From the NCBI GenBank assembly GCA_900088475.1, contig FLMG01004217.1:1-46516 (forward strand): a stretch of 46,516 nucleotides of DNA, read 5' to 3'. This document shows, in pieces, positions 3,801 to 45,709 of the stretch; position 1 is the stretch's first letter, and every line of letters starts with the position of its first letter. The position numbers were made by a program, and so were the translations under genes. This DNA is from Hyphochytrium catenoides. Its lineage: Eukaryota; Protista; Hyphochytriomycota. The notes beneath the pieces were generated by a model, which saw only the letters and a list, made by a program, of their open reading frames with translations, had not been told where the DNA came from and did not search any database.

Positions 3801-3846
3801 TGTCTCTCTTTCTCTCTCTCCCTCTCTCTCCCTCTCTCTCTCCCCG

Positions 3847-3900
<54 letters not shown>

Positions 3901-6833: not shown

Positions 6834-7709
6834 TTAACTGTCCAGCGGCACAGTGCAGTAAGCACAGCTCGTCTTCTTCTTGAGCCAATCCAGCGCGCAG
6901 CTTTCGTGGAAGAGATGCCCACAGCGCGTCTCCACGGCGTGATCTGCCGCTTCAAAGCCATTCAGGCAGATGCTGCACTCTATTTCACAGCCATCGTTGC
7001 TAGCGCTGACATTCACATCCCGTAAGGTCTTTACGCTGTCTATCAGGTGCGAGGCATCTTCGACCGGAAGGCCCAGGAAGGAGAGAATGACCTCTCCGAT
7101 GGCTTCAAAGTAGCGGTAGTGCGAGTTGGTGAGGATGGACTGAGAGAGCATCTTGCTATCGTCTGCGCCGACGCTTAATAACAGAGAGAAAGAATGAAGC
7201 AAGCTCAACATAAAGCTTCGAAGCTTCTCCACTCTCTCCGAGACAATGCGCGGCTGAGACTTGCCAAAGCTGTGCTTACTCGGGAAATCTATGGCCTTGA
7301 TCGCTTCATAGAGCTCTCTTCCCTTGGGCAGCATCTTGTCATTGGCCTTCAAGAACCTTAGCAGAGTCTTTCTGAACTCTCTGAACTCATTGTACCGATG
7401 ATAGGACTGCCAGCTGTGCGAGCAAGAGTTCTGCACTGTCATTTTGTACGCGATGTAGACGCGCTTGCTCTTCGGGATCACCACGACCGGCTCCACCTCG
7501 AACTTCTCGATGCGCATCAGCCAGACCTTCACCAGCCGCTGGCGCAGTGTGCGGCGAGAGAGAGAGAAAGACTTTCTTCTCGTGCTGAGCGCGGTGCAAG
7601 CCATTTGACTATCTTTAAGGCACAGCGAGGAAGAGAGAGAGGTAAGGGAAGACACGCCGACCTCCGAGGCCAGCTGCCGCTGAACCATCGCCACAGACGC
7701 CGCTGACAT
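6834..7709 (-). CDS. PX-domain + C-terminal RING-H2 protein (putative endosomal E3 ubiquitin ligase), single exon
   Basis: 291-aa ORF. PX signature: YIAYKMTV...WQSYHRYNEFREFRKTL...FPSKHSFG...IVSERVEKLRSFMLSLL. RING-H2: CSIC...CGHLFHESCALDWL...CAYC. Confidence 0.9.
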   Translation of the reverse strand: MSAASVAMVQRQLASEVGVSSLTSLSSSLCLKDSQMACTALSTRRKSFSLSRRTLRQRLVKVWLMRIEKFEVEPVVVIPKSKRVYIAYKMTVQNSCSHSWQSYHRYNEFREFRKTLLRFLKANDKMLPKGRELYEAIKAIDFPSKHSFGKSQPRIVSERVEKLRSFMLSLLHSFSLLLSVGADDSKMLSQSILTNSHYRYFEAIGEVILSFLGLPVEDASHLIDSVKTLRDVNVSASNDGCEIECSICLNGFEAADHAVETRCGHLFHESCALDWLKKKTSCAYCTVPLDS

Positions 7710-8474: not shown

Positions 8475-8895
8475 TCCGCGCCGCCTTGCGAGGGCTCCCA
8501 AACACAGTTTTGGGCTGTACATCTGTCGGCCATGGTGTAATAATACGAGAGAACTCTCAGTCTTGTCCAGTAAACCACATAATAATACTGTAACACCATT
8601 GGCTCAAGAAGACCAAAAGGGACATCAACATGGTGTGTCCATCTGGGGAAGCTCTTTCCTTATTGCTGCACTTTTCTCTCCCAGCCTGTGAAAAGCGGAC
8701 GATGAGATTTAGCTATAAGCCTCCCCAAAGATGGGGGTTACAAAAAGCTACAAACATTGTATCGCGGATATAAGCATCTATAATCATTGATACTACCTTC
8801 TAAACCATTAAATAATTCTGAACGAACGCATCGATAGTTGCAAAGCACTGGTGCCGTTGAATTCAAAGATCTTTCCTCCCCCAGCCCTTCCCTCC

Positions 8896-8902
8896 NNNNN
8901 NN
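8896..8902. other. Assembly gap (7 N)
   Basis: Run of N. Confidence 1.
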
Positions 8903-9701
8903 TTTCTCTGTCTCCCTCTCTCTTTTTATCACACTCTGTCTCTCTACCACTCTCTATGTGTGTCTCTTCTGTGTCTCTTTCTCTCAACTCACACATTCTC
9001 TCTCTCTCTCTTCTTCCTTTCCATCTCTTGAAAGTTTCCATGGAAGATCCGCCTTGCGAGCTGATGACAAGGGAAAGAGAAAGATCCAGCGGCATGTCCT
9101 GCCTCCTGACATTTCCAGGTTTTCAAGGTTCATGTCTTCCTCTCTCTCCTCTCTCGAGCTCTTCATGCAGACAGAAACCGCGAGGCGCTCAACACGCGGT
9201 GTCTCCCCGCCGTCGTGCTCCTTTTCTGCCTTCGTGTTCTCTCTTCCCTTGTCGCCAATCGGTGCATGCCGCCTGGGGAAGCCTGAAGATCGCTGGCCGG
9301 GAAAAGAGAAATGTTGCATGATGAGCACTGCCTTCCGCCATTTAACTCTTTTCTACACCACGGGCGCTAATAACTCTCGCTCTCTTCATTATTGCAGTCG
9401 TGGGACCCCATTCTGTCTCTCCACCTTTCACTCTCTCTCTCCCTCTCTCTTCTATCTTCTATGCTGACGGTCGGTAGATCTCAGAGCTTCGTAGTGTTAA
9501 TTAAGGCTACTAATAACAAAGGCGTTAGACATACTGTTGATCCTGCTTCTCTCTGTCTCTCTCTCTCTTTTCTCTCCTTTTGACTTGGCATTTCTTCCGG
9601 GACCTTCAGGGCCCTATCCATAAGCCAGTCCTCTGCTTTTATTTAAAAAGAGGAAGAGAAGCAGCGGAAAGAGAGAGAAAGAACGCAAGATCCTAGTGGA
9701 T

Positions 9702-9926: not shown

Positions 9927-11107
9927 AGAAGCGAAACAGACAGAGGAAGGGAGATTCTTACCCTACAGCATCGCCCGTAGCGTTCCAAGAGATGAGAGCA
10001 GAAGAGTTGCTCGTCTGATTGACCACAGCCAAAGGCCGGTCGGGAACCTCCATGATCAACCGCGTGTCTGCTCAAAAAAAGAGAGAGAGGCGGGAAGGCA
10101 ATGAGAGAAGGAGAGAAGAAAGAGAGCCAATTGGAGCGATGACGGCAGGAGTTCAGTGTTAGACGGAGAGAAGAGCCAGAGAGACGCTAGCGAGACAGAA
10201 GGTACATTACTTGGGAAAGCAATCACTCTCAATAGTCTGAGCGAATGGAGAGACCTCTACCATTCTGCAGAATGTTTTGCTAAAAAAGTGACCACGATGT
10301 CTTTTGACCACGATATCTTTTGCCAGGACAGGTATCCCACAGCGCTTGGCGCTTGGCGCGTGGATATAAAGAGCGAGAGAGAGAAAGAGAGGAGAGGAGA
10401 GAGAAAAAAAGAGAGGAGAGAGAGAGAGAGAGAGAGAGAGGGCGAAGAGAAGGACCTACTCGGAAGATTGAAGATCGGTGCCCATCCAAAGTCAGTGATC
10501 CCATTAACGAAAACCCCTACCAAGAGAGACTGAGACAGTAACGACGGTGGTCCTGGGAAACGCGTGAGAGGGAGAAGGATTGCCTGGGAGATACAAGTAT
10601 GAACACAGAGAGAGAGAGAGACAAAGAGAACGAGGGTGGTTAGCTAGGGATAGACCGGCGAGAACGAGAGAATTAGACTGAAAAAAGGGGAGAAGAATGA
10701 GGAGAGAAAGAAAGGCCGGGAACAGAGAGAAGGAAAGAGAGCATAACCCTAGAGAAAGGACCACAGGACAGAAAAGCAAGAACGACTAAAAGGAAAGAGT
10801 CGGACGCAACCAGGTCGTCCTCAAAGGACAAACCCTCAACAAACCCGAGGAGTAAGAGAACCAAGGACAGCGAGGCCATGGAGAGAGGTTAGGGGAGCAC
10901 TTGAGGCTTACCGCTAGTGACGCGTGATGCATGTGCAGCCCGTAAGAGGGGAAGAGGCCAGCAATGATGGCGATCAGGAGCACGAGAGACAGGTAGAGCT
11001 TCACATAACGAAAGAAAAGACTGCACCAGGCAAACGTGAGATGGGCTGTGAAAATTCAGTAAATGATGAAAGGGACGACTCAGGGGAGAGATATGGGGAG
11101 AGAGACA

Positions 11108-11144
<37 letters not shown>

Positions 11145-13584
11145 AAGGAAAAGACAGGGAGAGAAAGAGAGGAGCAGGAGATTGTGGATAGGCGGAGATG
11201 AGGAGAGTGACAGGGAGAAAAGGAGATGGCGGCACTGAGAGACAGATAAGAGAGACACAGGGAGAGAGACAGCGGTAGCAGGAAGCAAGACGGGGACAGG
11301 AGATAATCAAAAGATGGGGCGGCGTGGGAAGGATGGTGGACAAGACGACGGTTCTGTAAGGAGATGCAGTGCAGCTCAAAAGCTGTCGCTTACGTCTCAA
11401 GACAGAGCTTCCAGAGGTGGTAGCCGGCCAGCCCCAGAGCCAGCAGCAAGAGGAGGGTGAAGAAGACGTAAGTCGCGGCGTTAACTGTCGCGCCTTCGCG
11501 TTGCTGAAAAGAGAGATCGACGTCCTGCAAAGGATGTGTAAGTGAGGGAAGGGGACAGAGAGAGAGAGAGAGAAGTAGAGACAAAAACAGAGAGGGAGAG
11601 GAGAGGGGAGAGATGAGGAGAGAAGGAAACGAGTGAGGGCAAGGGTAGGAGTTGCACTAAAGAAGACGTTTTTGAGGAGAAATGACACCCAGTCCAGAAC
11701 AGGAGCAATGACAGCCTCAACGTAAGGGAAGCACGCAACTCTCTTGTGAGAAATAAAGTCTAAAACGCTCAAAGTGAAGAGGCCGATGGTTCTCCATCGA
11801 TTGTGGGTGGCGATAAGACCTGGAGAGCACACAGAATAGAAAGTCACTGGCCCAGAGAGGTAGAAAGCGTGAAGATGTGGCTTCTTACGAGTGCGGGGAA
11901 GGTGGACGCTATCAGGTCCATGTTCAGGGTGATTGAGAAAGGAAGAACGTAGAGTGCAGACCACTTCAGAACCCGCCACCAAAGGCGGTGCTCCTCAGTG
12001 ATCCCATCCAGAGCGCGCTTTCCAGCGGCGAGGAAGAAGAAGTAAGCCACAGGTAGGAAGAAAGAGAAGTCAGCTGTGCCATTGATAAACATGGCCTGCC
12101 ATCGCCGTGAGTTGGTGCCGGCGTACAATGAAAACCTGACCGTGGAAGTGTGGAACATAGCATGAGTGATTTGCGCCAAGCCAACTTGCCCATCATAGAT
12201 TAACGTCGGACCTCATAGAGAAGAAAAGAAAGGAGCTGGCAGTCTAGATTGCACAGAGGAGAGAGAGAGAAGAGAGAAATAGATAAGATAGAGGTTGAGT
12301 ATGGGGGTTACCAGAAGCCAAACGTGATGATGGAGAACCAGAGCACCCAGGACGGGACCCCCCGGAAGAATGCCAAGCCGCAGAGAAGGGCGAACCCGCA
12401 GAGAAAGATGGCCAGCCTGTAGAGGTGAGAGCACGTAAGGCAGAGACCGTGGCTACAACTACTCGGGTTACGGAGAAGTATACACAGAGGTGGAGGAGAC
12501 TGAGAAGGCTCCCGAAAGGAGTGAACGCTGAGAAAGAGAGCCAGACTCGGGCCAGAGTGGAATAGGTGAGGCTAGAGTTGGGCTGAGAAGAGCTTCGGGG
12601 AAGTGGACGGGGAATCCGGAGAAAGAGGTGAAGAAGGTGGCGTACGTCAGGTCCTCGCAGTGTGACACATTGTCCGCCTTCTTGAACTGGAAACTCTTCG
12701 GAAACCAAGACTCAAAGGCGAGAGATTGCACGTCGTTCTGTTTGCTGGCAGTATAGCTATAGGACTCGCCTGGTGCGCAGAAAGCCCCGTCAGTAAGGTC
12801 CTTACGAGAGAGACCCTTTGAGAATAGCTCATCTTTCGTACCGCTAAGTCTGATCATAGCACAGCCTCCTTTACTGGGTAGGACCCCAGCGTGAATGGCC
12901 GCCTTGCAAATCCTGCTATCTCCTCTAAGAGTGCATAAGGGAGAACAGTCTTGCCGTGTGAGAAGATCTTCTAGAGCACTGAGAGAAAAGGGAGACCAGC
13001 CAAAAGCTCGCAGAGGTGCCACGGTTGGAAAGAAGAGCACGAAGTAGGCTCGGCACCACCCGTCAATCAAAAACACTAGCTCACCGGTAATTTCCAGTTC
13101 CCCACACCCTTAGGTTCGGATCGTTATCTAAGCATAACAAGCAGCGTCGTTAGACCATTCAGCAGCACTTCATGGTGGCGTAGTTATAGAAAGAGGCGCG
13201 AAAGACAGCGAAAGACATAAGCTGACATAGAAAAATGGCGACTAGTGATATGAAAAGTGTGAGGAAGTGGAGTCACGGTCAATTGGCAGCAGGGTTAAGA
13301 GTAAAGACACGGGAATGAAGGAGTGGACTCTCTCTCGGCTTACTCGAGAGACAGCCAGAGGGGCAGCGAATAGGCCGCCAGTCACTCGTGAAGGGCTTGC
13401 AAGAGTCTCCATTTAGACCACAATTTGGCCCTGGGAAATATTCTAAAGTCCTACAGCTTTGCTCGTCAGGCTTCTGATCTGGCACACCGCAAGCACACAG
13501 TGAGAAGATAGTTGGCATGGTGCAGGAAGGGAAAAGAAGTGTTGTCCGGTGAGAAAGAGAGGGAGGGACAGAGAGAGAGACAGA

Positions 13585-13628
<44 letters not shown>

Positions 13629-14663
13629 AAGCAAGAGTGAGGCCGGAATGCGCGCAGAGTGGACATATGCACATAAACGGAAGCAATCTTTGCGGAAAAC
13701 GAGAGCTGAAAGCAAAGCGATACGGAGGAGAAAAGAGCAACATAGGACGAGGAAGAGTAAGACTGGCAAGCTACCACCATGGATAAGGAGACAAGCTACC
13801 ACCATGGATAAGGAGAGCCATACCACGTCATAAGATTAGATGAAGACAAGCAGGTCGGACGTACCTCCTACCGTGACAGCGAAGTAGCTAAAGTAGAACA
13901 GCAGAACGAGCAGCATCACCGACAGACCTATGTACAGCGCCAACCACCGATAAGGCCTGAAAGACGATAAGAGGTCAGTGTAGCCGTCCTCCCTACTTCC
14001 ACGATAATCCCTCTCAAGCTAGGGCGTCTATTGTCCTCCTCTTTGCATCATGGATCCAAAGACATTTTATCTCAAACATCCTTGAAGTCCACCCTAGTAC
14101 CTCCACTGTGTGACTGCAAAGATTGGCCTACCGGGAGATGAAGCCTTTGATATCGTCCCAAGCGTCGGCGGCGTTCCTCTTGAGCACTTCCTTTCCTTTG
14201 GCAAATCGCTTCCTTTTTCTCATCTCAGCGACTGAAAGGTTGGAAAGAGATGACAAAGCAGTCGGGGCCCGGGAGTCAGGAACTGTTCGAAAGAGGAAAG
14301 GCTGAGGAGCTCCTAGATTTACCTGGTGTCTCAATCACTTCCCCCTCCAGTGGGCTGATCAGATCAGAACCTGTGTAGCCAACTTGCTCTCCAGTGTCAA
14401 TGACTACTTTGGCTCCATCGCCATCCGCGCTGGGTTCTACACATCAATGCAATAAAGGCAGCATGGCGATTTCTTAGAAGAAAATGCAGATGACACATCC
14501 GGGACGGATACCAGTAGGCATGAGGAACTGGGCTATATAGGGCACGACAGAAGTAAAAAGATGTGCAAAGAGAACAGCGTATCGCCGCCTTGCGCAGAAG
14601 TTAGGTTAGTGCACACTCACCGGTCAACATAGTCACTTCCTCGGTGGCCACATTGGAAGACAT
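9702..14663 (-). CDS. LCCL-domain multi-pass membrane protein with C-terminal FN3-like segment, multi-exon
   Basis: Spliced model from ATG 14663 (MSSNVATEEVTMLT) to TAA 9702-9704, all GT-AG. After an N-terminal TM (WLALYIGLSVMLLVLLFYFSYF) comes NCGLNGDSCKPF..IRCPSGC, then the LCCL core VWGTGNYRGDSRICKAAIHAGVLPSKGGC..SLAFESWFPKSFQF. Several TM helices follow, including the family-like GLHMHH and GVFVNGITDFGW motifs, then YSLMLNGVMVYQG..LRPGTTYF. Resembles the fungal/oomycete-type LCCL membrane family. Confidence 0.88.
11108..11144 (+). repeat. (CAGA)n tetranucleotide repeat in an LCCL intron
   Basis: GACAGACAGACAGACAGACAGACAGACAGACAGA. Confidence 0.9.
13767..13816 (+). repeat. Exact 25-bp tandem duplication in an LCCL intron
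   Basis: CAAGCTACCACCATGGATAAGGAGA occurs twice (13767-13791, 13792-13816). Confidence 0.95.
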
Positions 14664-23330: not shown

Positions 23331-23429
23331 GCCGTTAGCGGCTCTGTTGCCTTGGTCAGCTCCTGTACACTTCACAGTCTTCCAAGCTCCCAAAGGGCAG
23401 TGCAGGGGATAAACTCTGCAGCCTGGGTT

Positions 23430-23818
23430 CTTCTTTCTCTCTCTCTCTCTCTCTTTTTCTCTCTCTCCTTTTCTCTCTCACTCTCTCTCTCCTTTCCTCT
23501 CCCTCTCTCTCTTTCTTTCTCTCTCTCTCTCTTTCTTTCTCTCTCTCTCTCTCTTTCTTTCTCTCTCTCTCTCTCTCCTTTTCTCTCTCTGCTTCACCTC
23601 CTATCTCTCCCTCTTTTGTCTCCCCTCTCTCTTCGTCGTGCTTCTGATGAATCTCTTCTGCTCTTGTATCCTTTTCACCACCTTGTGGCAGCTTATCAAT
23701 CTGTTTGTCTTGAGTCTTCAGCTGTTGATGGTGGTCATCGAGGGATGGAAGAGAGAGGTAACAGGTGGGAGAGAGAAAGAGGCAGAGGAGGGAGAGGAAG
23801 AGAGAGAGAGGAGGAGAC

Positions 23819-23855
<37 letters not shown>
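23430..23855 (+). repeat. (CT)n tract (23430-23635) followed by a (GA)n tract (23768-23855)
   Basis: Direct reading. The two tracts are mutually complementary and lie upstream of the 24334 gene. Confidence 0.9.
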
Positions 23856-23856
<1 letters not shown>

Positions 23857-24333
23857 GCACCAGCGAAGCAGGATCATAAGAATAACCATCCTTTACCAAG
23901 GCGGAATCAGGAGAGAAGAGACGGGAGTTCTTTGCCCGGTTTGCTCTGTCTTCTGGAGGAGGCATTGAAGCTACGGCCCTTCTTTCCTCACTTCCTGTTA
24001 GTGTGTCAACCCTCCGCCGCTCAGTCTCTGCAGCATCCTCATAAATCTCTTTCTTCCTTTCTCACTCTGTCCTATATATGCCGCAAAGCTGCAAGTGTCA
24101 GGAGCTCCAGTTGACGGAAAACCTTCATGTCGCCACGCCTTCCTCAGCGTGTCTGAGTGTACAAGCCGCGCATTCCTTTCTCATTGTCGACGATCGTCTT
24201 CTCCATCGCTCAGTTCTCACTCTTGCGTGGTCCTTTTGCCCTTCCTTTTTCTGTCAAACCGCTTCTTTAGTCCTAACGCAGCGGGACGTCATTGCAAAAG
24301 GGCAAATTGCTCGACCTCCTAAGTAAAGGCAGA

Positions 24334-25608: not shown

Positions 25609-28600
25609 TCATTGATCGTTACTATCAATCCTCGGTCGTATTCTTCTCCTCGCCGTCTCTTCCTTCTCTGGCTCCTCGCCGCCCTCCTTCTCTACCGGCG
25701 TCAGATTGACACTAAGGGACTTCCTATTGCTGATAACAGTATGAAGAGAAGGAGTTCCTAGTCGTGAAGCGCACTCTTCTAACGTTCTCTCTATCCTAAA
25801 AGAGCAGGCAGGGTGAGACATACAAGGCGAAACAATTAAGAGAGAAAGGAGCATGATAGGAAAGGATAGGTGACGTCTCTTTAGGAGCAGAGTTGGTTCA
25901 GCTTTAGGTCAGTTTTTCCGCGTTACCTTGTTTGGCACTTAATGCGATAAAGATGGGGCCACGTCATTCTCTGGCCTCCTCTCATAAAGTCCTTCATGTC
26001 CTCGACACTGAGTTTGGTGGGCAAGGTAGTTGCAGGATAGACAGGAAAGAGGCCAAACGAAATATGCGTAAGCAAGGCGGCAAAGTGACCGGAGAGAAGG
26101 AGGAGGATTGTTAGAGTTCTTGACAGTGTAGGACATAGGTGATCCTCCCAAGGCTCTGCTCTTCACTTTTCACATCCCCTGTTGTCCCCTCTCATCTCAC
26201 CTCGGATGGGCCAGCACCCTCCATAATAAGTCTGAGAGCCTTAATCTTGGCCACATGTTTATATCCTTGTCCTCGCCTAGGTAACTCTGCAAAGATGAAT
26301 GCTCGAGTTAACATTATAAGAGCAAAGAAAGGCGGTAGTATGTCTCCGGCCACAACGCTGAGAGGAGAGTAGCTAGGGCTTAAGACGAAGAGCTGTATCA
26401 ACTGCATTAGCTAAATCTCTCGATAGGTGGACAGGGTCGGCGAAAGTCAGGCAAAAGAAGAGACCTGCCGGACGAGAATATGCGCTTCCTGCGGCAGTAG
26501 TCCCAGTCGATAAGCTTTGTCCAACCGGTTTCGGATGTCTACAAGGAGAAGTTGCTGCACTGCTGATAGGGGAGAGATGGGCCTAAGAGACATGTGGATC
26601 CGGAGGACAAGATAATGGGTAAGTATTTGAAGGGACCAGGGCCCGACGGTATACAATCAAAGCAGACACAATCGCGAAAGCCAAACGGAACTGGGCAATA
26701 CCATTGGAACTTGGAACAGGAAAAGGCATTATTCGCCACACTAGCTTAGGTGGAAGGAAAGGATGGAGAGTATCAAGGGGAGAACGAGGCTCTGAAGAAA
26801 AGGAGATGGCTTTCAAGAAAAGGTCAAGGCTTTGAAGGAAAAGTGTACGACTGGCAGAGGTGATCCCGCTTACTTGGTCCTATCCCTAAGGAAAAGAGCA
26901 ATGTGTGGATTGGCTTGTGAAACGATGAAGTGAGACACGTGAAAGAGAGACGACAGCTCCTGCATGGGAATATCTCGAGAGAAGGTACCATCTCGGTACT
27001 TTGCGCCCGCAGATCGCAGCGGTACGATCTCTCCACTGCAGAGAACAAATATTCGTCAAATCTTGTCGAACTACCTACCGGTTTACAGCGCAAGAAGTTG
27101 ATGGTGTTCCAAAGCATATGAAGGCTAAGGAAGACACAGTGAAATGCCATGAACTATAGTTCTTTATCTTACTCTTTGGTCTTGCAGAGCAATTGCTGTG
27201 GTTTCATCACACCCGTCAGAGCGCAAGAGGCCGCCACGGCACTTCGCACGAGAACATCAGGGGTAATGAGGTGATTCAATAGCGAAGTGTCCTGAGAGCC
27301 AAATGTAAGCAAAAGAGTCCAACAGGAAGGAAAAAGGCTGTTGTCAGAGATAGATCGACCAGGAGGTCGAATAGGAAGAGGACACTTGTCTGGGCTTTGG
27401 GGACAAATGAGACGTGAGAGATGATATGAAAACAAAGGACTGATGCCAGCGAGGCCCACGCCTTACCCCTAGCTCTTTGCAGCTAACTGTGATATTGAGG
27501 ATCCGGCCGGTGCGCTCGTACGCTTCCTGGAATGTGAAATTTCCTGTTATTGGCCCTAGCACGTCCAGGAAAGCTCCTGAATCCACGATCACGCCTTCTT
27601 TGAAAAATCTAATGACACACAGAATCTAAGATATGGGCCATAGGAAAGAAACAGAAGAAAAAGCTATAGGAAGTAGCTTTCAAGCAAGGGTAAGCCAACG
27701 ACTTCTTCAGAGCACAAGAGTCTGATAGAAGGCGGCAAGATCCCGCTTTTGATCAACCTCTTTAGCATTCCAGAGAAAGGATCGAACCACCGCTGGCCAA
27801 ATCGTGTTGAGACGTCTTCCCTGATGTACTCCGTCTGAAAGGAGAGAGAAGCGCTGAGTCAGGTCTATGCGAAAACCCCGTAGCGCACAAGAGAAGCAAA
27901 GCCAAAAAGATTAGCATAGCCCGTGACAGCCATCAGCGCGTCAGCCGCTGGAGAGAGGGGTTACGGAGATATCAATGTATAGGAAGGACTTTGGGCTAGG
28001 GGAAGGCAGAAATCTCCATAGAAAAGGATCTACCAGCTCCTCATCCGTCCTGCAGCCAAGTAGTCCTGCTACTATAGCTCCTCCGCTGGTGCCGCTGATG
28101 ACCCTCGGCAGCATATTGAACCTATGTAACTCAAAGGCCAAGCCCATGTGGTACATCGCCAGCGCTCCCCCTCCACTGAGACAGAGAGCAGTTTCGCCCA
28201 CTGCGTGTTGGGCACCCGCAAGGAAGCGTTTCTTCTCCAACAAAGAGAACGAAGACGAAGGGAACTCCGTATCAGTAATGTACCGCACTTGCTCCTCCAG
28301 CTCCTCTATGAACTCTTGGATCAACTTCTTCGTTCCGACTCCTGGAAATCTGAAGTTGAAGGGCGAGCAAACATACGCATAGTTCCGATTGATGACAGAA
28401 ATGAGCATCTGGGAGAACTCTCGTACTCCTTCACCCTTGCGACGCTCCAGCTAGGAAAAGTCCGTTAGTGATGGAAAATAGCTGATGACAGCTAAGAGAG
28501 GACAAAGAACTCAAAGGATAGAAAGAGTATCTAGACTGCCATAACCCAGGACCATTCGGACCAACTATTCTAGTGAGCAGGCGCTTATCTGTTGGTCGGA

Positions 28601-30249: not shown

Positions 30250-30879
30250 CCTGCCTCTTTGTGCCTCTTAAAGGTTCTGGCTCATAAAACTCTTTTCCCG
30301 TTCACAAGTCAAGCTTCCAGCAAGAGAGGGAGAGAAAGAGAGCTTTCCACCAGCAAATAGATTGAGGACGCTCTCGCCTGCATGTGGGACAGCCTCGACC
30401 TCTGGACTACCAAGCCTCAGACGCCGCTGTTACGAGCAGATGATGGGAGCAGCTCCACCGCCAGTTGAGCATCAGCGGCGGCGGGCGGCGGAGGGAAGGG
30501 AAGATGATGGCGCGGTTCGGGACTTTTTGATGCTAAGGAAAGCCTCACAACGGCACTTTCTTCTTCTTCCATCTTCTTCTTTCCCTGTCGGACACTACGT
30601 TTGGTTACTCTCTTTTCCTTCTCTGTCTCTCACTGTGTCTCGGTATGGGTGTATGTCTATCCCTCTTCCTCTGTCTCTTTCTCTGTCTTTATTGCACGTT
30701 CTTTCTCTCTCTCTCTGTGTGTCTCTTGCACTCTGTCTCTCTCTCTCCATGTCTCTGTCTCTCTTTATGTCTCTCTCTCTCTCTCTCTCTTGGGTCAGAT
30801 GCTCATACTCATCATCAGCTTCCCTGCTCCTGTCTGTTGGGGCTAACGAATCAGATTTAACGGCCCCCGCAATGCCCTC

Positions 30880-30925
30880 ATCCTAGACCGGCAGCGGCAG
30901 TATCATAGACCGCTGCCGGTAGGAT
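30880..30925. other. GC-rich hairpin in a divergent intergenic region
   Basis: ATCCT[AG]ACCGGCAGCGG-12 nt loop-CCGCTGCCGGTAGGAT: an 11-bp perfect stem plus 5 bp beyond a 2-nt bulge. Confidence 0.7.
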
Positions 30926-32501: not shown

Positions 32502-33497
32502 CTAGGCCATCTCACAGGTGCAGGACTCAATACCCTTCGGCCTCCAGTCATATTCCATGTATCCCGCAACATCTTGTGCCAATCGAGCTCCAAACTCCCG
32601 CATAACGAAATAGAAGGAGAGATCAATGCCTGCAGATATCCCTGCGTCATAAGAGTCAATAATCTCCACCCAGAAGGTCAGAGCAGGTTGGACTTGCCAA
32701 CTTACCAGCCGATGTAAGGATCCTACCATTGTCTGTGAACCTCCGACAACGACAAAGTCGGGCGCCAGGGCACTGTGAGCTGACAAATTCAAATGCACTT
32801 CTATGCGTTGTTATGTCCAGCCCGCCAAGAAGCCCACACTTCCCTAGGAGAGCGACCCCAGTGCATACGGATAAGATGAATTCTAAAGAGGGCTCAATGC
32901 TCTTGATCCAGCCTAAGACTCTTTTGTGCAGATGATGATTAGTGACAACCCTTCGCTCAGTCATAGTAGTCGGGCAATGGCACGTTTCTCGCTTCATCAT
33001 CAACTTACAATGGGTTATTCACTTCCTTTCTGACTCCGTAGCCTCCAGGTACCAACAGTATATCTAGGTTGGGAAGTCCGACATCGCCAATGATGAAGTC
33101 CACCTGTACCTTCAATCCGTTTCTCGCAGTTATCAGATGCTTAGCACCCACAGTCACAACCTGACAACACAAGCAAGGGATAACACGTGAACTCGACTAG
33201 GTCAGAGCGATGCTTTAAGTGCTAAGAAGAGACCGGTAAGTACTGCTTTGTATTGCATGCAACCATTTAAGGGACCTCATGATCGATCGGTAGCAGTAAG
33301 CGTTAGCGAGAAGCTATATCTACCTTGAGGATTCCTCCGTGCCTGGCGCCAACAAGAGAGAAGACCTCGAAGGGTCCGCAAAAGTCAAGTACTTCAGCTT
33401 CGTCAAACAGCAGAATGCCCAGATGTCGCTGCTTCGTGTGCTTCTCGCCTTCTTGATCGATTTTATCCGAAGTGCTACCAAGGGAGGATGCGGCCAT
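32502..33497 (-). CDS. DJ-1/PfpI (ThiJ) family protein, bacterial isonitrile-hydratase-like subtype
   Basis: Exons 33497-33324, 33160-33009, 32920-32706, 32641-32502 splice in frame. Product: GILLFDEAEVLDFCGPFEVF, LDILLVPGGYG, nucleophile elbow SVCTG, ITTH, DNGRILTSAGISAGIDLS, VAGYMEYDW. Confidence 0.93.
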
Positions 33498-33739
33498 AGT
33501 CTATTGTTGGTCTACTTCTTCCTCGTCGCTTCTGTGCGAAGGCACCGAGCTCAGGTTCGCTGGCGCGAGTGTAACAGACAGTAGAGTTCCGCCGTCCGAA
33601 CCTAGGCGACTAAAAAGAACTGCGAAGACAACAGCCGCAGCAGCAGGCGACGTTTTTTTCCTCTGGTCTATAATAGACTCCGGATAGGCCAGAAGAAATT
33701 TCTCGAGCAGAAGAGGAGATTGAGAAGAGCAGAGTCCGG

Positions 33740-38100: not shown

Positions 38101-40090
38101 AAGAAGACCATTACTGTCGACGATGGTTGAACGAAGAGACAAAGAGAGAGACAAAAATTAGGTTAACAAAGGTACTGGGGAATGTTGCCTAGTTATAGAA
38201 ACCTATACACGAGACATGAGAGAGAGAAAGAGTGCTATCGACGAAGAAAAAGCCGACAGAACAGGGAGAAACAATGAGGTGATAGTAAAACTCATTAACG
38301 GATACATGATGGCAGACGTAGAGTTTGGGAAGAGGCAGTATGCTGAAGACTTGGCGTTGAAGGCAATATACTAAGAAGATAGAGAGTAAGTCTAGGACGA
38401 GGAAAAAGGACAGAGAGATAATGAGGAAGCTGGAAGATAGAAAAGGGGGCGTGGGAAACGACCAGAGGACGATGGACACCCGCGAGATATTGAAGAAAAC
38501 GCTGCGTATATTATACTTAGTAGCATATATATCGACAGAGAGAGAGTTACAAGGAAAAGACAGAGAATGAGACTGATGGAGAGAAGCTGCCGAATTGACG
38601 AGGAGCAACGGTTGCGAGCGGCGGTGGCGAATGGGTTTCAATAACGCACTCCATAGGTGGGGGCCGGGAGTGGGAGGGCTGCCAGGAAAAAGCGAGAAAA
38701 TAGGACCGATGTTAGCCACTAAGCTACGAAGACACGCGAAAAAGAGGGAAGGAAAGAAAAATCTGGGGTTAGAGACATTCTGAGAGAGGGTCAGAGGAAG
38801 AGTTAATTAAGGCAAGAGTTAGCTAGCAGTGAAACAGTAGTGTAGGGGGCCAAGAAAGAGCAAATAGGAAAGAACCTTTAGAGCGCTACCTCAGAGAGAA
38901 GAGCAAGAAGAGGGCCGCCCGCCGTTCTACACTTGGCTAAGAGATAAATTGTGGCCTTGTAGCATCATCTCTTGGGAACCTGTGGCTGCAAGCACATGAA
39001 GAGGATAGAGGAAGTGGCTTTCTGCTGCCTGGCTGAGGTAGAGGATAGGAGATAGGTTCTCTTGGGTTCTCTATCTTGTACTGCTCCTGCCTTCTTGTCT
39101 CTCTCTGGCTATGGAAGGACTTCTTCCAGGGACAAACGCATGTCGTGGTCGTTGGGACTGGGACCAAAGAACAACTAAGCAGAGTTCCAGGATGACTGGA
39201 AGGCGATAGAGACGCCTATAAGATAGTTGGTGTCGTCCTTGGCGAGAGAGGTGCAGCGACTTTCACATACCATAGATTCCCTGAATAGTTTCTCGTTTTA
39301 TCTCATCCTTGTTCATAATCTTAGCGATGGCTCGCTCTTGCGATGATCTGTCGCAGAGTGAGGCCAGAGACGCTGAATTCTCCTCTACTATAACCTAAAG
39401 AGCGTTCCAAGGTTCTGCGGCAGAATCTTCCTGACAACAGTGAACGACCATTTAAAGTATAAAGACTTTACTGAGGCATCGTGGAGCAGGATCTGTGCTT
39501 GTTCCACTTATATTCCCACGACCGACGAAGACTCTTCGGGCTTCTTGCTGCTGGTGCTTGTCCAGTAAACAGACGCGGTGGACGCAAAGGCAGCGTCAGT
39601 CACTTCTGCTTCTCTTGCTTTATCATAGGGGTGGCCGTCCTGCTCAGCGCAGTCATTGTTGGGATAGTTCTCTTTCTTCAGGATCATCTCGCTCTCACTA
39701 TAGGAAGGCCATAGGTTGAATATCCGGGGGGGATATTGGGTTTTCCTGGCACGGTTAGAGGATGGGGCTGAACCTCGGGCCTCAGTCTCAGATTTGCTCG
39801 GTCAGCCTCAGCCTCTCCCGCCTGCCCAGACGTAGACACAGCGGCAACGGAGAGGCAGGGGAGGCACAGCTGACTGCACCTATTCGGCGCAGCAGGAACA
39901 GTCAACCGCCCGCCCGCCCTGTCTTCACTGCGCCAAACGTACGTTAGAAGAAGAGAGAGTACGTAATTAATTTGTAGTCGTGGGGGTAAGGAGTACTCAC
40001 TTCTTGTGAGTTAGCTTAGTCCTTCTTGTGGGTTAGTCGTAGAGTTAGGACACGTTGGCGATTACTAACGGGGCCAAGAGCCTCCTTCCG

Positions 40091-40212
40091 CTTGACTCAG
40101 CTAGGCGGCAAGGAGAGCTCCCAGCTAGTAAGGTCAAGCGCCAGTTTGATTCCCCCAGCCAGAGGCTTACCATTCATTTGCATGTTCTCTCTCGCTCATC
40201 CTGGTGAGCAGA
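40091..40212 (+). repeat. Inverted homologous copy B (pair with 37149-37274)
   Basis: CTTGACTCAGCTAGGCGGCAAGG..GTCAAGCGCCAGTTTGATTCCC..AGAGGC..GTGAGCAGA aligns with the reverse complement of copy A. Confidence 0.8.
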
Positions 40213-42061
40213 AGGAAAAGCCCTGAATCATCACCAGGCAGCATATCATTCGGCGAGTCTCTTTCTTCGTGCCATCTCCCACAAATTTTGTCACGTGGAA
40301 GGGCATTGAAAACCAATAGATGGCAAGGCTGTACTCGGATAAGGGCCGGGCGGGTGGAAAAGCTGTCCCCTGGTCTGTTAGTAGCCTTTCTACCTCTTGT
40401 CTCCTGCTGCAGCGCTCGCCCATAGAAGGATATTTCTGGCGACGATCCCCTATCATCATCAGCAGTCTTCCGCTGCTCGATGACCTTGAGAATCTCCAAT
40501 GTTCTAGTTTTCTGGCTCTTCTTGCTTTTCCCTTATTAGTAACCGCACTCTCTTCTCTCACCGTACGGCCTGTCTCGGCTCTGCCACCACTAGGACAATC
40601 GAAGAAGTCTGCTGTTTCCTGCTGATCTAGGTAGAAGATGATGCCCTCTGGCTTGGTTTGTCACATCACCACAAAGCGGAAAGAGATCTGTCTTTTTTTA
40701 TTAGCGTTATTATTACTGCGCAAACCGCTTCTAGGCCGACCTCTTCAGCGTTTTTACCTCTCTCTCTCGTTCTCTCATTTCCTCTTCTCCGCCTATGTCC
40801 CCCTCTCTCTTTCTTTTCTGTTGAACGTATTCTTAGGGCGAGGAAAAATCAGCAACAACAACCTACGACAAAAAGGAGTCAGACTTGTTGTTGTTAGATT
40901 GCTTCCGGATGATGTTTGCTGCCTGAAGCAAGAGGCGACGAGACCACCTTCTTCTCCTATCTCAACAATCAACATCATAGTTCTACAGAAAAAAACGCGC
41001 TGGTGGTCGAGATTCTGTCGTCAACCCTCAGTCTTCCACCAGACCCCGAGCGAGGGAGCCACCATCACTAGTGTACATCAGGACGACAGACAACAGCGAC
41101 GACAGTCGTTGGTAAAGGTCCGTGCTAATACGAGGAAGGAACGATAATACTAAGGGGGCTGACGAAGGGGAGCGAAAGAAGCAAAAAATGGGAGGTGATG
41201 AGAAAAGGAGGAGAAAGACCTGCTGGCTGACTGGCTGGAGTGTGCGCGGTAGGATGAGGAGCGAGAAGGAAGGGGCAAAGAAGGGAATGTAATGCAAAGA
41301 AGGAGCGTAGTAGTAGAAGGGTTAGGGTTAGCCTTTGTCTGATGAAGAGCAAAGAAGAGGCGCAATAAAAAAGAAAGAGCTGGACGACAGAGAAGAGCCC
41401 ACAAGGCCACCCATGAAGAGGACAACGACTATGCTCCTGCTCGGCAAATTTGAGTAGCTGAGTTCATCATCTCTCTCACTTTCCGACGAGAGAGAAGAAG
41501 AAGAGCGGGGGAAGAAGAAGCCACGAAAAAGAAGAAGAGTAGTCGACAAAGCCAACAACAACAAACAACTTTGAACATTACTAGGAAGCTGCTTCATAGA
41601 CTGGAGGAGGAAGAAAAGAGGAAAGAAGATCAACTCATACTCGCTAGTGGCAGCAAAGAAGAGTGATAGGCAGCCGGTTAAGGAAGGCAGTCTTAAAGTC
41701 GATTTGTCACACCTAAGTCCCTTTTGAGCAGCAAGAATAGTACCATTCTGGTGGTAGAGAGCTTGACGACGGGAGAAAAGGTCTCCTAATGGTCTACGCA
41801 CCCCTTCCACTTGCTGGGTGGGTGATACCCCGCACAAAGAAGAGTCTAGCTTTGTGTCTGTTGACATGACCATCCTTGTCGCCCTACCCTACGAACTACG
41901 AAGCCTACGTTTGGCACTATTCTCGGACTGCATTCTTTCCGAGGTGGGAGAGGGTTTATTGTGTCTTTGTCTTCTAGTAGAGTAGTTTGCCGCCGTCCTC
42001 CTCCTAGCGTGGGATCGTCAGGTGTGTAAAACCCCTTCAATGGACCTATCCACAACAGCTA

Positions 42062-43417
42062 CTAGAGCGGATGGCCGTAGTGGAAATCTCTCCAGAGCGC
42101 CGAAGCCGCACTCTTCTCTCTCCGTTGTGTCTTCTTTGAATGATGGTAATAGAACCGTGCTAGCGTCGCATCAACGTCAAGACCAGATATTTTGCTTGCA
42201 ACATTCTGGACAGGTTGTGTTGGTGGAAAGTTAAGCCCCTGCGTCATAATACCAGCCACAAGCCCCGTTTCCGATTCAATGATAGGCCCGCCGCTGCTCC
42301 CTCCCTCGGCGTCACAGGAATGAACGAAGGTCGTTGATCTGATGGGAACGATCGAATGTTGTCCTTCCGGTAGAATGGTGCAGCGCACAACCCACTCCAT
42401 GCTCCGGCCGGAGGGGTAACCGAGGTACCTTAGTGTACTTCGTATAGGGTCGACTCCGGTAATGACAGAGAGTCTAGCAGGAGGGGGTTTGTCCACCACG
42501 AGGATAGCATAGTCTGTGCCGTCAGAGTAAATCGATCTTAAGATTCGAATACATTTACTCGACGTCCTCGAGGGTGGTTTTCCGTCGCCCGATATATGAA
42601 TGCCCCATTCAATATGCAACCTGGGGCACTCCTCGTTCCAGTCGTCACGGGTGGCCATACTTTGCTCAAGATACAGGCAGTGCGCAGCAGTAAGAACAAT
42701 TCCATGGCCCAAATGTGAAGCCGTGCAAACCTTGGAGTTTAGATTGGAGATTAGACGAAGCTGTCCGATAGCGGGGACCAGCTGTTGGAGTTTCTTCGGT
42801 AGGGTCTTTATATTCCATACAGGTCTCAACATGTTGTCGTGGCACTTCACATTGAATGACTTAATAATATTTCTCCGGTTCATCACAACGTTGTGAAGAC
42901 CTCTGTCATATCGGATAGGACCATTTCCTCGGGTGGATTGGAAATCAGGGAGGAGATAAGCATTCAGCGTGCAGCCATGCGCCACCGCAATCACCGAGAT
43001 CCTATTCTTTGTTGCAGCGTTGGGCCACTGCTTTACTCTTGCAAATCGGTGAAAAGGAACGCAGGTTCGCCGTGTCTGATGAAGGTCGTTGATAAACACA
43101 CAAGCGGAGTATCCCTTGTCTCGCAGATAATTGATCATTGCTTCCTCCCGAGATAGGAGCTTTCTTCTGATCATACCTGCAGATGACGACGTGCCGTTTC
43201 CCTTGCTTTTGGTGGCGCGAAGAGAAGGTCGCTCTCCATTTCTTTGACCGTTATGGAAAACGGATACCAGAATTCTCGAGTCATTCCTAGTGGCATTGCT
43301 GAACCCATCCAACAACGGACTACCACCATCGCTTGCAAAAACCTTTAGCATAAAGCTGTTGTTGCTTGAGAGGAGCGCCACCAGCAGGATGACCACCCTA
43401 AGGAAAAGACTGACCAT
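42062..43417 (-). CDS. Secreted trypsin-like (clan PA, bacterial-type) serine protease with N-terminal beta/gamma-crystallin-like domain, single exon
   Basis: Likely start is ATG 43417 (MVSLFLRVVILLVALLSS, signal-like); an upstream in-frame ATG lies at 43483. The triad motifs are intact: CTASHLGHGIVLTAAHC, DYAILVV, LGYP, HSCDAEGGSSGGPII. About 43108-42842 reads ACVFIND..NRISVIAVAHGCTLNAYLLPDFQ..NIIKSFNVKC (Greek-key crystallin-like). Confidence 0.88.
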   Translation of the reverse strand: MVSLFLRVVILLVALLSSNNSFMLKVFASDGGSPLLDGFSNATRNDSRILVSVFHNGQRNGERPSLRATKSKGNGTSSSAGMIRRKLLSREEAMINYLRDKGYSACVFINDLHQTRRTCVPFHRFARVKQWPNAATKNRISVIAVAHGCTLNAYLLPDFQSTRGNGPIRYDRGLHNVVMNRRNIIKSFNVKCHDNMLRPVWNIKTLPKKLQQLVPAIGQLRLISNLNSKVCTASHLGHGIVLTAAHCLYLEQSMATRDDWNEECPRLHIEWGIHISGDGKPPSRTSSKCIRILRSIYSDGTDYAILVVDKPPPARLSVITGVDPIRSTLRYLGYPSGRSMEWVVRCTILPEGQHSIVPIRSTTFVHSCDAEGGSSGGPIIESETGLVAGIMTQGLNFPPTQPVQNVASKISGLDVDATLARFYYHHSKKTQRREKSAASALWRDFHYGHPL

Positions 43418-43889
43418 GGGCGGCAATGCGATAAACTCGTGCTTCCTCCTAGAAACTCTTTCGATAGGTGCTTCTTTCAGCATGTCCTTTGCGGCACCAG
43501 CAAGATAGCGACACTCCTGCTGCGTCTCCACGTCCTGTGCTTCCGAGCTCTTTTGGCGTTATCACGGATGCTATCCTTTGTTCATGTAGTAGAGAAGACA
43601 ACAACTCCCGTACCGAACACCTCAATAGCTGAAAGAGAAGCGGCGCCCAAAGAGGATTGAGTTGTGATCCAATATCGGGGCTGTGACAGAGAGTCAACTT
43701 TTAGCTCCCCTTGCTTGTTCTGAGGAAGTTGCAGTCAGGAGCTCGCTAACGTCCTTCTTCTTGCGCTTCCGGTTGCGGAGCGTTTTAGCGGCGGGTTCCT
43801 AACTCTTGCTAAGAAGAGCTTCTCTGAGCTTCTTGGTGCTAGCTTCTTGCCTTCGTGGCCTTATTTTGTTGACCATATGTTTAGCTCCC

Positions 43890-44319
43890 CGCAACAGCCG
43901 GATCACCATCAAGGAGCATTGTCTGTTACCTCTTATGTTATTATTTCTATTTTGATGGGGATTTTGGCGGTGTAGGTAGCCTGTAGAACTACTATGCCCC
44001 AAGAGCGACAGAGCCAGACCATGAATTGGAAGCTACAGCACGGCCCTGCGGAGAAGCAGTAAGAAGAGAGCCTGGTGGCTCATTTTTTGGTGAGCAGGAT
44101 GACAACCGACATAATTCTACGGAGTAATAATAACTAAGAAAGTCCCGAAGAAGCACCAGGTATGATGGTGAGCTTGGCCACAAAGGTACGAAAAGGAGAG
44201 TGGAGCCCGTCGTAACTACTACACGATTGTGAACTAGAACTATACATGGACCCCCAAAACCATGCAATAAAACAGTAGAGCGAACCTTTTTCCCGTGAGT
44301 GCGGTTGAAGGTGCAGGTA
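43890..44319 (+). repeat. Direct repeat copy 1 (~420 bp)
   Basis: Near-identical to 44696-45102, from CGCAACAG..GATCACCATC to GGTTGAAGGTGCAGGTA, with a few substitutions and small indels. Confidence 0.95.
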
Positions 44320-44428
44320 GCACTCAACGCGTTTGTGCTACATAAGTGGGAGCAGCAGTAGTTCTCTCATCTAATACATGGATGAAGTGCGTTGGCTGTT
44401 TCAGCTTCTGTTGCGAGCGAAAATAGTG

Positions 44429-44450
44429 TTTAGGGTTAGGTTAGGGTTAG
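44429..44450 (+). repeat. Short interstitial telomere-like tract
   Basis: TTTAGGG TTAGG TTAGGG TTAG. A shorter GGGTTAGGGTTAG occurs near 41319-41331. Confidence 0.5.
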
Positions 44451-44695
44451 AAAGACGACTAAATAATAACAATAAATCTCTTCTTCTTTACTCCTTTTTC
44501 TAGAGTTCCTGGATATTAGTAGTAGCTATCATAATCAGCATCTTTTTCTTAGTAGTACAATAAAGGCGTCATAGCTTTCCTGGTTTCTTTTCTTCTTCCT
44601 CGTGCTTCTTGTTCTCCTTCTTCTTTCTTCATCTCTTCTTCTTCTTTTTTATTAAGTAAAAAAGTAGCTATTAGTCATGATAAAAAAGCACTTCA

Positions 44696-45102
44696 CGCAA
44701 CAGGCAGATCACCATCAAAGAGCATTGTCTGTTACATCTTATTATTTCTAATTTGATGGGTATTTTGGCGGTGTAGGTAGCCTGTAGAACTACTATGCCC
44801 CAAGAGCGACTGAGCCAGACCATGAATTGGAAGCTACAGCACGGCCCTGCGGAGAAGCAGTAAGAAGAGAGCCTGGTGGCTCATTCTGATGACAACCGAC
44901 ATAATTCTACGGAGTAATAACTAAGAAATTCCCGAAGAAGCACCTGGTATGATGGTGAGCTTGGCCACAAAGGTACGAAAAGGAGAGTGGAGCCCTAACT
45001 ACTACACGATTGTGAACTAGAACTATACATGGACCCCCAAAACCATGCAATAAAACAGTAGAGCGAACCTTTTTCCTGTGAGTGCGGTTGAAGGTGCAGG
45101 TA
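44696..45102 (+). repeat. Direct repeat copy 2 (~410 bp)
   Basis: Matches 43890-44319. Confidence 0.95.
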
Positions 45103-45634
45103 CTTGTCTGCAGAGGGGACTGGTAACGGCTGACTCCGCCCCGGGGGAGGTGCTGGAGTTGTACTTTGTATGATCAGCCTTTGGTACGAGTACTGCGGCC
45201 AGATGTCAGATTGCTGTCCGAGAGACAAGTCTTTGAGGACGATTTTTGGCATCAAAGCGACACGTCGATGGAAGCTCTCTTGCTGATAATCTATGTCATT
45301 TGCATTCGTGTCTCTCTCTTTTATCTCTCTGTGCCCCTTCTGCTGCTCTTCTTGATTTCCTCTCTCTTTGTCTCTTGCTCATCATTCTTCTGAGTCTCTA
45401 ATATCCTCGGTTGTCTTATCTGTTTGTGTAGGTCTCTCTGTTCTTTGCTTTATCCACCCTCGTAAGCTGCTACTCTTCTCTCTTCTCCATTTTGCGCTTG
45501 TTGTACCTCTCTCTACTAAAGCTCTCCTCTCTTCCCTTTCCCTCTTTTCGCTCATTTGTATGGCTTTTGTGCTGGTCTCACATGCTTTAGCGCTTTCCAA
45601 TCTATCCTCAACAAGGTTCTATCTTTGTACAATC

Positions 45635-45709
45635 NNNNNNNNNNNNNNNNNNNNNNNNNNNNNNNNNNNNNNNNNNNNNNNNNNNNNNNNNNNNNNNNNN
45701 NNNNNNNNN
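45635..45709. other. Assembly gap (75 N)
   Basis: Run of N. Confidence 1.

Follow-up and report, generated by a model that had tools for sequence, protein, structure and literature searches.

The stretch of DNA analysed here, the 46,516-nucleotide contig FLMG01004217.1 of Hyphochytrium catenoides (hereafter the window), carries on its minus strand an intron-free gene for a serine protease of bacterial type, and horizontal acquisition from bacteria is probably the best explanation of its origin. The open reading frame (ORF) at 42062–43417 runs without interruption for 451 amino acids, as seen in the ORF list and its translation, and the frame remains open 5' of the ATG at 43417 up to a stop at 43559–43561. 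Simple arithmetic puts the chance of an open frame of 451 codons at about 1e-5 per window, and the GC content of the gene is 0.501, compared with 0.499 for the window. A first-pass annotation, made from the letters alone, had described the gene as an intronless, secreted fusion of a crystallin module and a bacterial-looking protease lying in decayed DNA. The absence of introns is borne out by the uninterrupted frame and by the protease part, which aligns to its bacterial relatives without a break or an intron-like gap; both the ORF and the protease of bacterial type that it encodes are genuine. An NCBIfam scan of the 451-residue protein returned no family, and a word-index search with the whole protein was blank, the filter of that search having missed relatives that were later found by HMMER.

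Residues 215–397 scored above the Pfam cut-offs for both Trypsin_2 (35.4 bits, cut-off 27.6) and Trypsin (31.3 bits, cut-off 20.6). The AlphaFold model was built with a 136-sequence alignment, since a single-sequence model was uninformative, with a predicted local distance difference test score (pLDDT) of 33; over residues 200–440 the block-mean pLDDT was mostly above 80 (range 62–97). Foldseek returned S1 proteases, namely Streptomyces griseus trypsin, plasmin and kallikrein, at E-values of about 1e-11 and target template-modelling (TM) scores of about 0.7, and the domain is predicted to adopt the chymotrypsin double beta-barrel fold. The catalytic residues occur in the order His, Asp, Ser, within conserved motifs, as is characteristic of clan PA family S1, and all three stand in the catalytic columns of the alignment (column counts here and below are taken over its 135 relatives). 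The trypsin-fold protease with intact His/Asp/Ser motifs that had been proposed from the letters is thus upheld by the Pfam scores, the confident model and the placement of the triad. All six cysteines of the family are also present (231/247, 264/289 and 346/368, each column being Cys in at least 132 of the 135 relatives), and they would form disulfide bridges in these pairs.

An exhaustive HMMER/phmmer search of 1.84 billion representatives found 374 proteins at E <= 0.001 and 163 at E <= 1e-10, with a best E-value of 1.4e-23; the best 150 of the 374 were inspected. Identities among the matches listed are 27–42%, the best bacterial relatives reaching 35–42%, and the matches listed all fall on residues ~180–430, none of them reaching residues 1–180. 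The retrieved relatives constitute a coherent family, in which a lipobox-like N-terminus occurs in 67 of 150 members and an IIGxNDL-type start, mostly preceded by Lys, in 91 of 150, and which is marked by the motifs 'N-I-P...AIG', 'GCTATHIGxGxVLTAGHC', 'WG', 'DYA', 'RPLEWS..C', 'HQCDTEPGSSG' and 'VGIHxGG...N'. Dense bacterial genes surround the genes of three relatives, including PdxJ, SMC and ferrochelatase around P0001, CheX and a response regulator around P0008, and TatA and a radical-SAM gene around P0043. The named relatives are a Corallococcus caeni peptidase, a serine protease from a Bdellovibrionota metagenome-assembled genome (MAG) and a JGI 'V8-like Glu-specific endopeptidase'. A genome scan for the motif HQCDTEPG, in which one genome per bacterial or archaeal species and an 8-sequence bacterial alignment were used, and whose reliance on a single motif biases the taxon list, gave 32 confirmed loci, all in Bdellovibrionota, Myxococcota, or loosely labelled or unlabelled MAGs. 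Those of Bdellovibrionota belong to Oligoflexia/Silvanigrellales, Pseudobdellovibrionaceae and Bacteriovoracaceae (labelled relatives include Bdellovibrionia and Bacteriovoracia), and those of Myxococcota to Myxococcales, Polyangiaceae and Sorangium. The loose MAG labels read 'Pseudomonadota', 'Proteobacteria', 'Betaproteobacteria' or 'bacterium', and the two such loci put on the tree cluster with Silvanigrellaceae. Because the named relatives and the labelled loci fall in these groups, the kinship with secreted proteases of Bdellovibrio and myxobacteria, which the first-pass annotation had suggested, holds. A profile built from bacterial sequences alone recognises the query at 144.8 bits (E 1e-46, profile positions 9–184 of 193), as against 35 bits for the generic Pfam model, and every relative that could be placed is bacterial, both of which agree with the earlier reading of the protease as bacterial in type. 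No orthologue in another eukaryote was seen among the placeable matches. In the literature on Bdellovibrio proteases no link to this family was found, nor was any paper found that names the gene at 42062–43417 or its bacterial family as a transfer.

Quick IQ-TREE analyses without an outgroup were run on 151 rows and then on 77 rows that included labelled loci. The query joins the bacterial metagenomic sequences P0003, P0005, P0006 and P0043 weakly, with a Shimodaira–Hasegawa-like approximate likelihood ratio test (SH-aLRT) value of 80, and its terminal branch of 2.1 (2.14) is about three times the median of 0.64–0.76, which calls for caution over long-branch effects. The case for transfer rests on distribution, a single eukaryotic sequence being set against bacterial members that number in the hundreds. 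Vertical inheritance in an old eukaryotic S1 lineage that was lost or is unsampled elsewhere, or else a transfer from a eukaryote to bacteria, is quite improbable; it could draw on the unrooted tree, the weak placement of the query and the fact that most library matches come without taxonomy, but all placeable matches are bacterial and 374 matches stand against a single eukaryotic sequence. The query also possesses the family-specific 'NxLxPV...LP...AIG' segment, the six-Cys pattern and the EW motif, and the gene is free of introns, while at least one neighbour, the DJ-1/PfpI gene, has one.

The stretch is held by three DNA runs (X1, X2 and X3), which derive from two samples of one study. In X1, a single 2060-bp unitig (41853–43912) spans the ORF together with 209 bp and 495 bp of flank at a word depth of 262, the neighbouring unique unitigs lying at 249 and 251; in X2, the gene unitig has a depth of 31.5 and the flanking unitigs 26.7–27.7; and in X3, a shallow run, the gene unitig has a depth of 6.06 versus ~2–3.4 for those flanking it. 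Of the seven coding sites at which sample S2 differs from the window, four are silent and the other three are conservative replacements (E263D, V177A, V120I), so that neither a stop nor a frameshift arises; the resulting ratio of nonsynonymous to synonymous polymorphism (pN/pS) of 0.23 is only suggestive (binomial p = 0.06), and the flanks carry allelic differences like those in the gene. The only runs of N in the window lie at 8896–8902 and 45635–45709, so that 8903–45634 is gap-free, and because these runs lie outside, the protease gene is joined without a gap to the intron-bearing DJ-1/PfpI gene as well as to PX+RING, LCCL and DUF3336+patatin genes. The intron of the DJ-1/PfpI gene, which the first-pass annotation had also noted, was seen as a canonical GTAAGT...AG intron of ~85 nt at roughly 33006–32922. 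Residence of the protease gene in eukaryotic DNA is thus supported by a depth equal to that of the unique flanks in X1 and X2 and by one unitig across gene and flanks. An intron-free, bacterial-like gene near repeats and the run of N at 45635–45709, known from runs of one study only, might still be suspected of being bacterial contamination or a chimeric assembly join. This is extremely improbable in view of the depth, the gap-free link to an intron-bearing gene and the mostly silent alleles; moreover, the flank within the gene-bearing unitig is non-bacterial, no bacterial genes stand alongside, the identity to the best bacterial relatives is only 35–42%, the N-terminus is of eukaryotic type, and the gene shares both the GC content of the window and the pattern of allelic variation of its flanks.

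The N-terminus begins with residues 1–18, which are hydrophobic (Kyte–Doolittle ~2.7 in a hydropathy scan) and modelled by AlphaFold as a helix over residues 2–18 (pLDDT 83–87), in line with the signal-like start claimed at first pass; cleavage after VFA28 is plausible, as read from the residues themselves and not from a prediction tool. The extension that follows contains four N-x-S/T sequons within residues 19–76, a Ser/Gly/Thr-rich stretch, and four cysteines in one segment (106, 119, 149 and 192). Pfam gave no family at E <= 10 for residues 26–200 or 86–200, and no crystallin family at E <= 1 for the whole protein; a PDB search of the N-terminal region at E <= 10, an Atlas feature search of residues 88–200 alone and a word search restricted to the N-terminal region were all without a match, and phmmer found nothing between this region and the 153 retrieved proteins, their own N-terminal extensions included. 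The AlphaFold pLDDT is below 50 at residues 20–88, 110–116 and 127–193 and does not exceed the mid-60s elsewhere in the extension, and hence the fold of residues 20–193 is not readable from the model. The region is nevertheless taken as coding, because ~190 codons without homologues stay open (a chance of ~1e-5 by simple arithmetic), because it holds the four sequons and four cysteines, and because three of its five allelic differences are silent. Residues 29–192 may represent a lineage-specific pro-region or targeting region.

It was in this N-terminal part that a beta/gamma-crystallin Greek-key module had been proposed, and this claim was not supported. A regular-expression scan of the protein for the Greek-key signature, [YFW]xxxx[YFW]xG followed by a conserved Ser, gave zero occurrences. 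A divergent crystallin domain fused to the protease could be argued from two Y-x4-F spacings (YSACVF at 103 and YLLPDF at 154), from the weak beta-hairpins that AlphaFold predicts at 104–121 and 141–145, and from an Atlas search in which the whole protein matched a bacterial Crystall_4+Trypsin cluster at rank 21. Yet Gly follows neither spacing, the confidence of the model over the region is as low as described above, the rank-21 match is due to the protease part of the query, and the Pfam, PDB and Atlas searches with the region itself brought up no crystallin. Furthermore, among ten relatives with long extra regions there are zero crystallin domains, the extra domains being a ricin-type lectin, a subtilase and a weak, sub-threshold M48 match. 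We regard a divergent crystallin domain as highly improbable. With neither a match to crystallin models or structures nor the Greek-key signature in its N-terminal region, the crystallin-protease fusion is not supported, and the record is corrected in that the gene at 42062–43417 is most likely no crystallin fusion.

The query departs from its relatives in the substrate pocket of the protease. Among solved structures, an unnamed serine protease, 7UXG, came first by sequence against the family profile; behind it stand the MEROPS S1B glutamyl endopeptidases (E 6.5e-11 to 1e-4), namely 1P3C, the glutamyl endopeptidase of Bacillus intermedius (BIGEP; E 6.5e-11), and 1QY6, the V8 protease of Staphylococcus aureus (E 3.5e-8), with Spl proteases and exfoliative toxins as further matches; no paper on entry 7UXG was found in the literature. 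The bacterial family and the S1B enzymes (V8, BIGEP) share 'DT..G.SG' and 'GIHxGG', which correspond to Thr190, His213 and Gly216. In glutamyl endopeptidases, His213 and Thr/Ser190 are mandatory S1-pocket elements of all members, Gly 216 and a free N-terminal amino group complete the site in enzymes of the V8/BIGEP type, and mutation of His213 inactivates most of them (PMC5508998). The query has Met391 in the column that aligns with the GIH of V8 protease and of the B. intermedius enzyme, and Ala370 in the column that aligns with the V8 'STTGGNSG' segment; in addition, it has Val at the near-invariant Ser343. Where the relatives start with IIG the query reads KCH, which confirms the missing IVGG-type activation site of the first-pass annotation, just as the Met of GIMTQG, where 133 of 135 relatives have His, confirms the replaced His. 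Both remarks gain meaning from the comparison with the bacterial family, in which the glutamyl-endopeptidase hallmarks His213 and Thr/Ser190 are present, whereas neither remains in the query. The S1 pocket would no longer be suited to Glu/Gln and would be more hydrophobic, and on its sequence the query would not be filed as a glutamyl endopeptidase, both the His213 and the Ser/Thr190 position being changed.

Since known enzymes mostly lose their activity when His213 is mutated, a less active enzyme has to be taken seriously as an alternative. Under a rival reading, what remains of the transfer is a gene that is unexpressed or in decay, with the frame still open and the protease no longer working. 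The long branch of the query, the loss of His213, Thr190 and Ser343, all near-invariant in the family, the gene-poor, repeat-rich neighbourhood and the absence of an RNA run on record for the stretch speak for such a relic, but all 451 codons are still in frame, neither the triad nor any of the six Cys has been lost, and a signal peptide can be predicted from the sequence. The seven allelic differences bring no stop or frameshift and four are silent, and the 192-codon non-homologous N-terminal part is open too, at the chance of ~1e-5 given above. We consider the relic unlikely, and transfer followed by remodelling of a working enzyme remains the preferred reading.

Table 1. Features of the protease gene and its upstream flank (window coordinates; protein residues in the feature column).
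Feature	Position	Strand	Basis or description
Complete coding sequence, intron-free	42062..43417	-	451 codons + stop at 42062-42064; ORF list, translation, homology E 1.4e-23
Alternative in-frame ATG upstream	43481..43483	-	22 codons before Met1; longer n-region ahead of hydrophobic core
Signal-peptide-like N-terminus, residues 1-28	43334..43417	-	Hydropathy scan, AlphaFold helix; hydrophobic core 1-18
Lineage-specific N-terminal extension, residues 29-192	42842..43333	-	No match in Pfam, PDB, Atlas or word search; pLDDT mostly <50
Clan PA serine protease domain (family S1, S1B-like), residues 193-410	42188..42841	-	Pfam, bacteria-only profile, AlphaFold, Foldseek
Catalytic His246 (TAAHC)	42680..42682	-	Invariant column, 135/135
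Catalytic Asp302 (DYAI)	42512..42514	-	Asp in 134/135 relatives
Ala370, Thr/Ser190 column (family motif CDTE)	42308..42310	-	Relatives 119 Thr + 16 Ser of 135
Catalytic Ser375 (GGSSGGP)	42293..42295	-	Ser in 134/135 relatives
Met391, chymotrypsin-numbering His213 column (family motif GIHxGG; query GIMTQG)	42245..42247	-	His in 133/135 relatives
C-terminal tail, residues 411-451	42065..42187	-	AlphaFold long helix 415-446; pLDDT 84-87, falling to 44 at end
Tandem duplication upstream of gene	43885..45102	.	43885-44319 vs 44691-45102, blocks 88-99% identical, ~790-806 bp apart (repeat search)

The features of the gene and its upstream flank are collected in Table 1. The flanks are gene-poor and repeat-rich, and no Pfam match was found in the flanking ORFs, which fits the 'decayed' surroundings described at first pass. 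The tandem duplication starts ~470 bp upstream of the protease ATG, contains duplicated reading-frame fragments and is in part high-copy (depth ~1070 vs ~250). High-copy repeats flank a single-copy island in which the protease gene lies, with depths in X1 of 1300–6200 at 40001–40400 and 1600–3800 at 45050–45600, against ~250 for unique sequence. CT/GA-rich, microsatellite-like tracts, which are read as (LS)n in the ORF lists and show strong local GC and AT skew, occur at 3729–4268, 8838–9467, 11080–11982, 13279–13743, 23352–23879, 30362–30886 and 40638–41147; because they recur in the protease flank too, they tie it to the rest of the genome. The DJ-1/PfpI gene lies at 32505–33500 on the minus strand, 9 kb from the protease gene, and is split over several frames. 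Further neighbours of eukaryotic type, likewise on the minus strand, are a PX+RING gene (6834–7709), an LCCL exon (12468–13076) and a DUF3336+patatin lipase exon (27941–28408); the PX+RING protein had no match at E <= 1e-5 in a word search.

Compared with known systems, the query is closest to the uncharacterised IIGxNDL family of Bdellovibrionota and Myxococcota, whose members have a lipoprotein-type or secretory signal, the start 'K-IIGxNDLxxV...N-I-P...AIG' and, besides 'GCTATHIGxGxVLTAGHC', 'DYA' and 'RPLEWS', the combination 'HQCDTEPGSSG...VGIHxGG'. It resembles this family in its protease domain of ~200 residues, the triad, the six Cys, the conserved N-terminal segment and Asn405, and differs from it in that a eukaryote-style signal and an unrelated extension of 165 amino acids replace the lipobox and the IIG start, that Met stands for His213, Ala for Thr190 and Val for Ser343, and that its branch is ~3x the median. 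In contrast to the S1B glutamyl endopeptidases, the query has neither His213 nor Thr/Ser190, nor a processed hydrophobic N-terminus. Streptomyces griseus trypsin and the animal S1A proteases share the same double beta-barrel fold at TM ~0.7, but at only 11–20% identity; unlike them, the query has no Ile16-Asp194 activation pair, and Ser374 precedes its catalytic Ser. Within the family, P0113 (659 aa, from a Logan contig of 4.8 kb), a distant member with an N-terminus very AT-rich in style, joins a Peptidase_S8 subtilase (E 1e-57) to a C-terminal Trypsin_2 domain, and P0082 (605 aa) has a ricin-type beta-trefoil lectin domain C-terminal to the protease. The lectin domain of P0082 indicates that the bacterial family recruits carbohydrate-binding modules, none of which is a crystallin. 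The horizontally acquired secreted hydrolases of osmotrophic stramenopiles (oomycetes and hyphochytrids) are likewise secreted degradative enzymes of non-eukaryotic ancestry, and the transfer of such enzymes into pseudofungi is well described. A serine-type endopeptidase has been counted among the convergent gene families of osmotrophs (PMC13345962).

Taken as a whole, the explanation that we favour, and consider fairly likely, is that of a nuclear protist gene derived from a bacterial secreted or lipoprotein S1B-like protease, since remodelled and secreted. The bacterial gene would have entered the nuclear genome of the protist and afterwards gained a eukaryote-style signal peptide and a sequon-bearing region of ~165 residues, which would have displaced the lipoprotein signal and the 'K-IIGxNDL' start, while the catalytic triad and the three disulfide pairs would have been kept and the S1 pocket remodelled from His213 to Met and from Thr190 to Ala. 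The product would most likely pass through the secretory pathway and act as an extracellular endopeptidase, its P1 preference probably no longer being of the Glu/Gln type predicted for the bacterial relatives, and the N-terminal region might serve as a pro-region or in targeting. There is direct evidence for the ORF, the fold, the catalytic triad, the kinship with bacteria, the genomic context and the depth; secretion, activity, the shift in specificity and a role in extracellular digestion are inferred.

Several observations weigh against this explanation. Most of the matches are without a taxonomic label, and the best 150 of 374 were viewed; the tree has no supported sister group for the query, whose branch is long and whose placement has an SH-aLRT of only 80; and the trinucleotide signature does not separate a host from a bacterial origin. 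Replacement of near-invariant family residues (H391M, S343V and T370A) means that the enzyme could be weak or inactive. All three DNA runs belong to one study, and the assembly itself may have been built from one of them; the runs on record that hold the stretch are all DNA runs, with no RNA run.

The gain of secreted hydrolases from bacteria is a recognised route to a wider diet in osmotrophic protists, and the gene described here adds to them a protease of an uncharacterised family that is otherwise seen in predatory bacteria and their relatives. It amounts to a natural experiment in which the triad and the disulfides were kept while both Glu-specificity residues were replaced and the N-terminus was rebuilt, and it bears on how easily an S1B pocket can be retuned. 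A more far-reaching proposal, which we put forward as rather doubtful, is that the new N-terminal domain replaces the free-Ile mechanism and that a hydrophobic Met213/Ala190 pocket replaces the Glu/Gln pocket. If true, the gene would document a switch of specificity that took place in nature, in which a eukaryotic host adapted an S1B-like protease to feeding outside the cell; the N-terminal module would then count as a novel domain that acts as a pro-domain or in substrate targeting.

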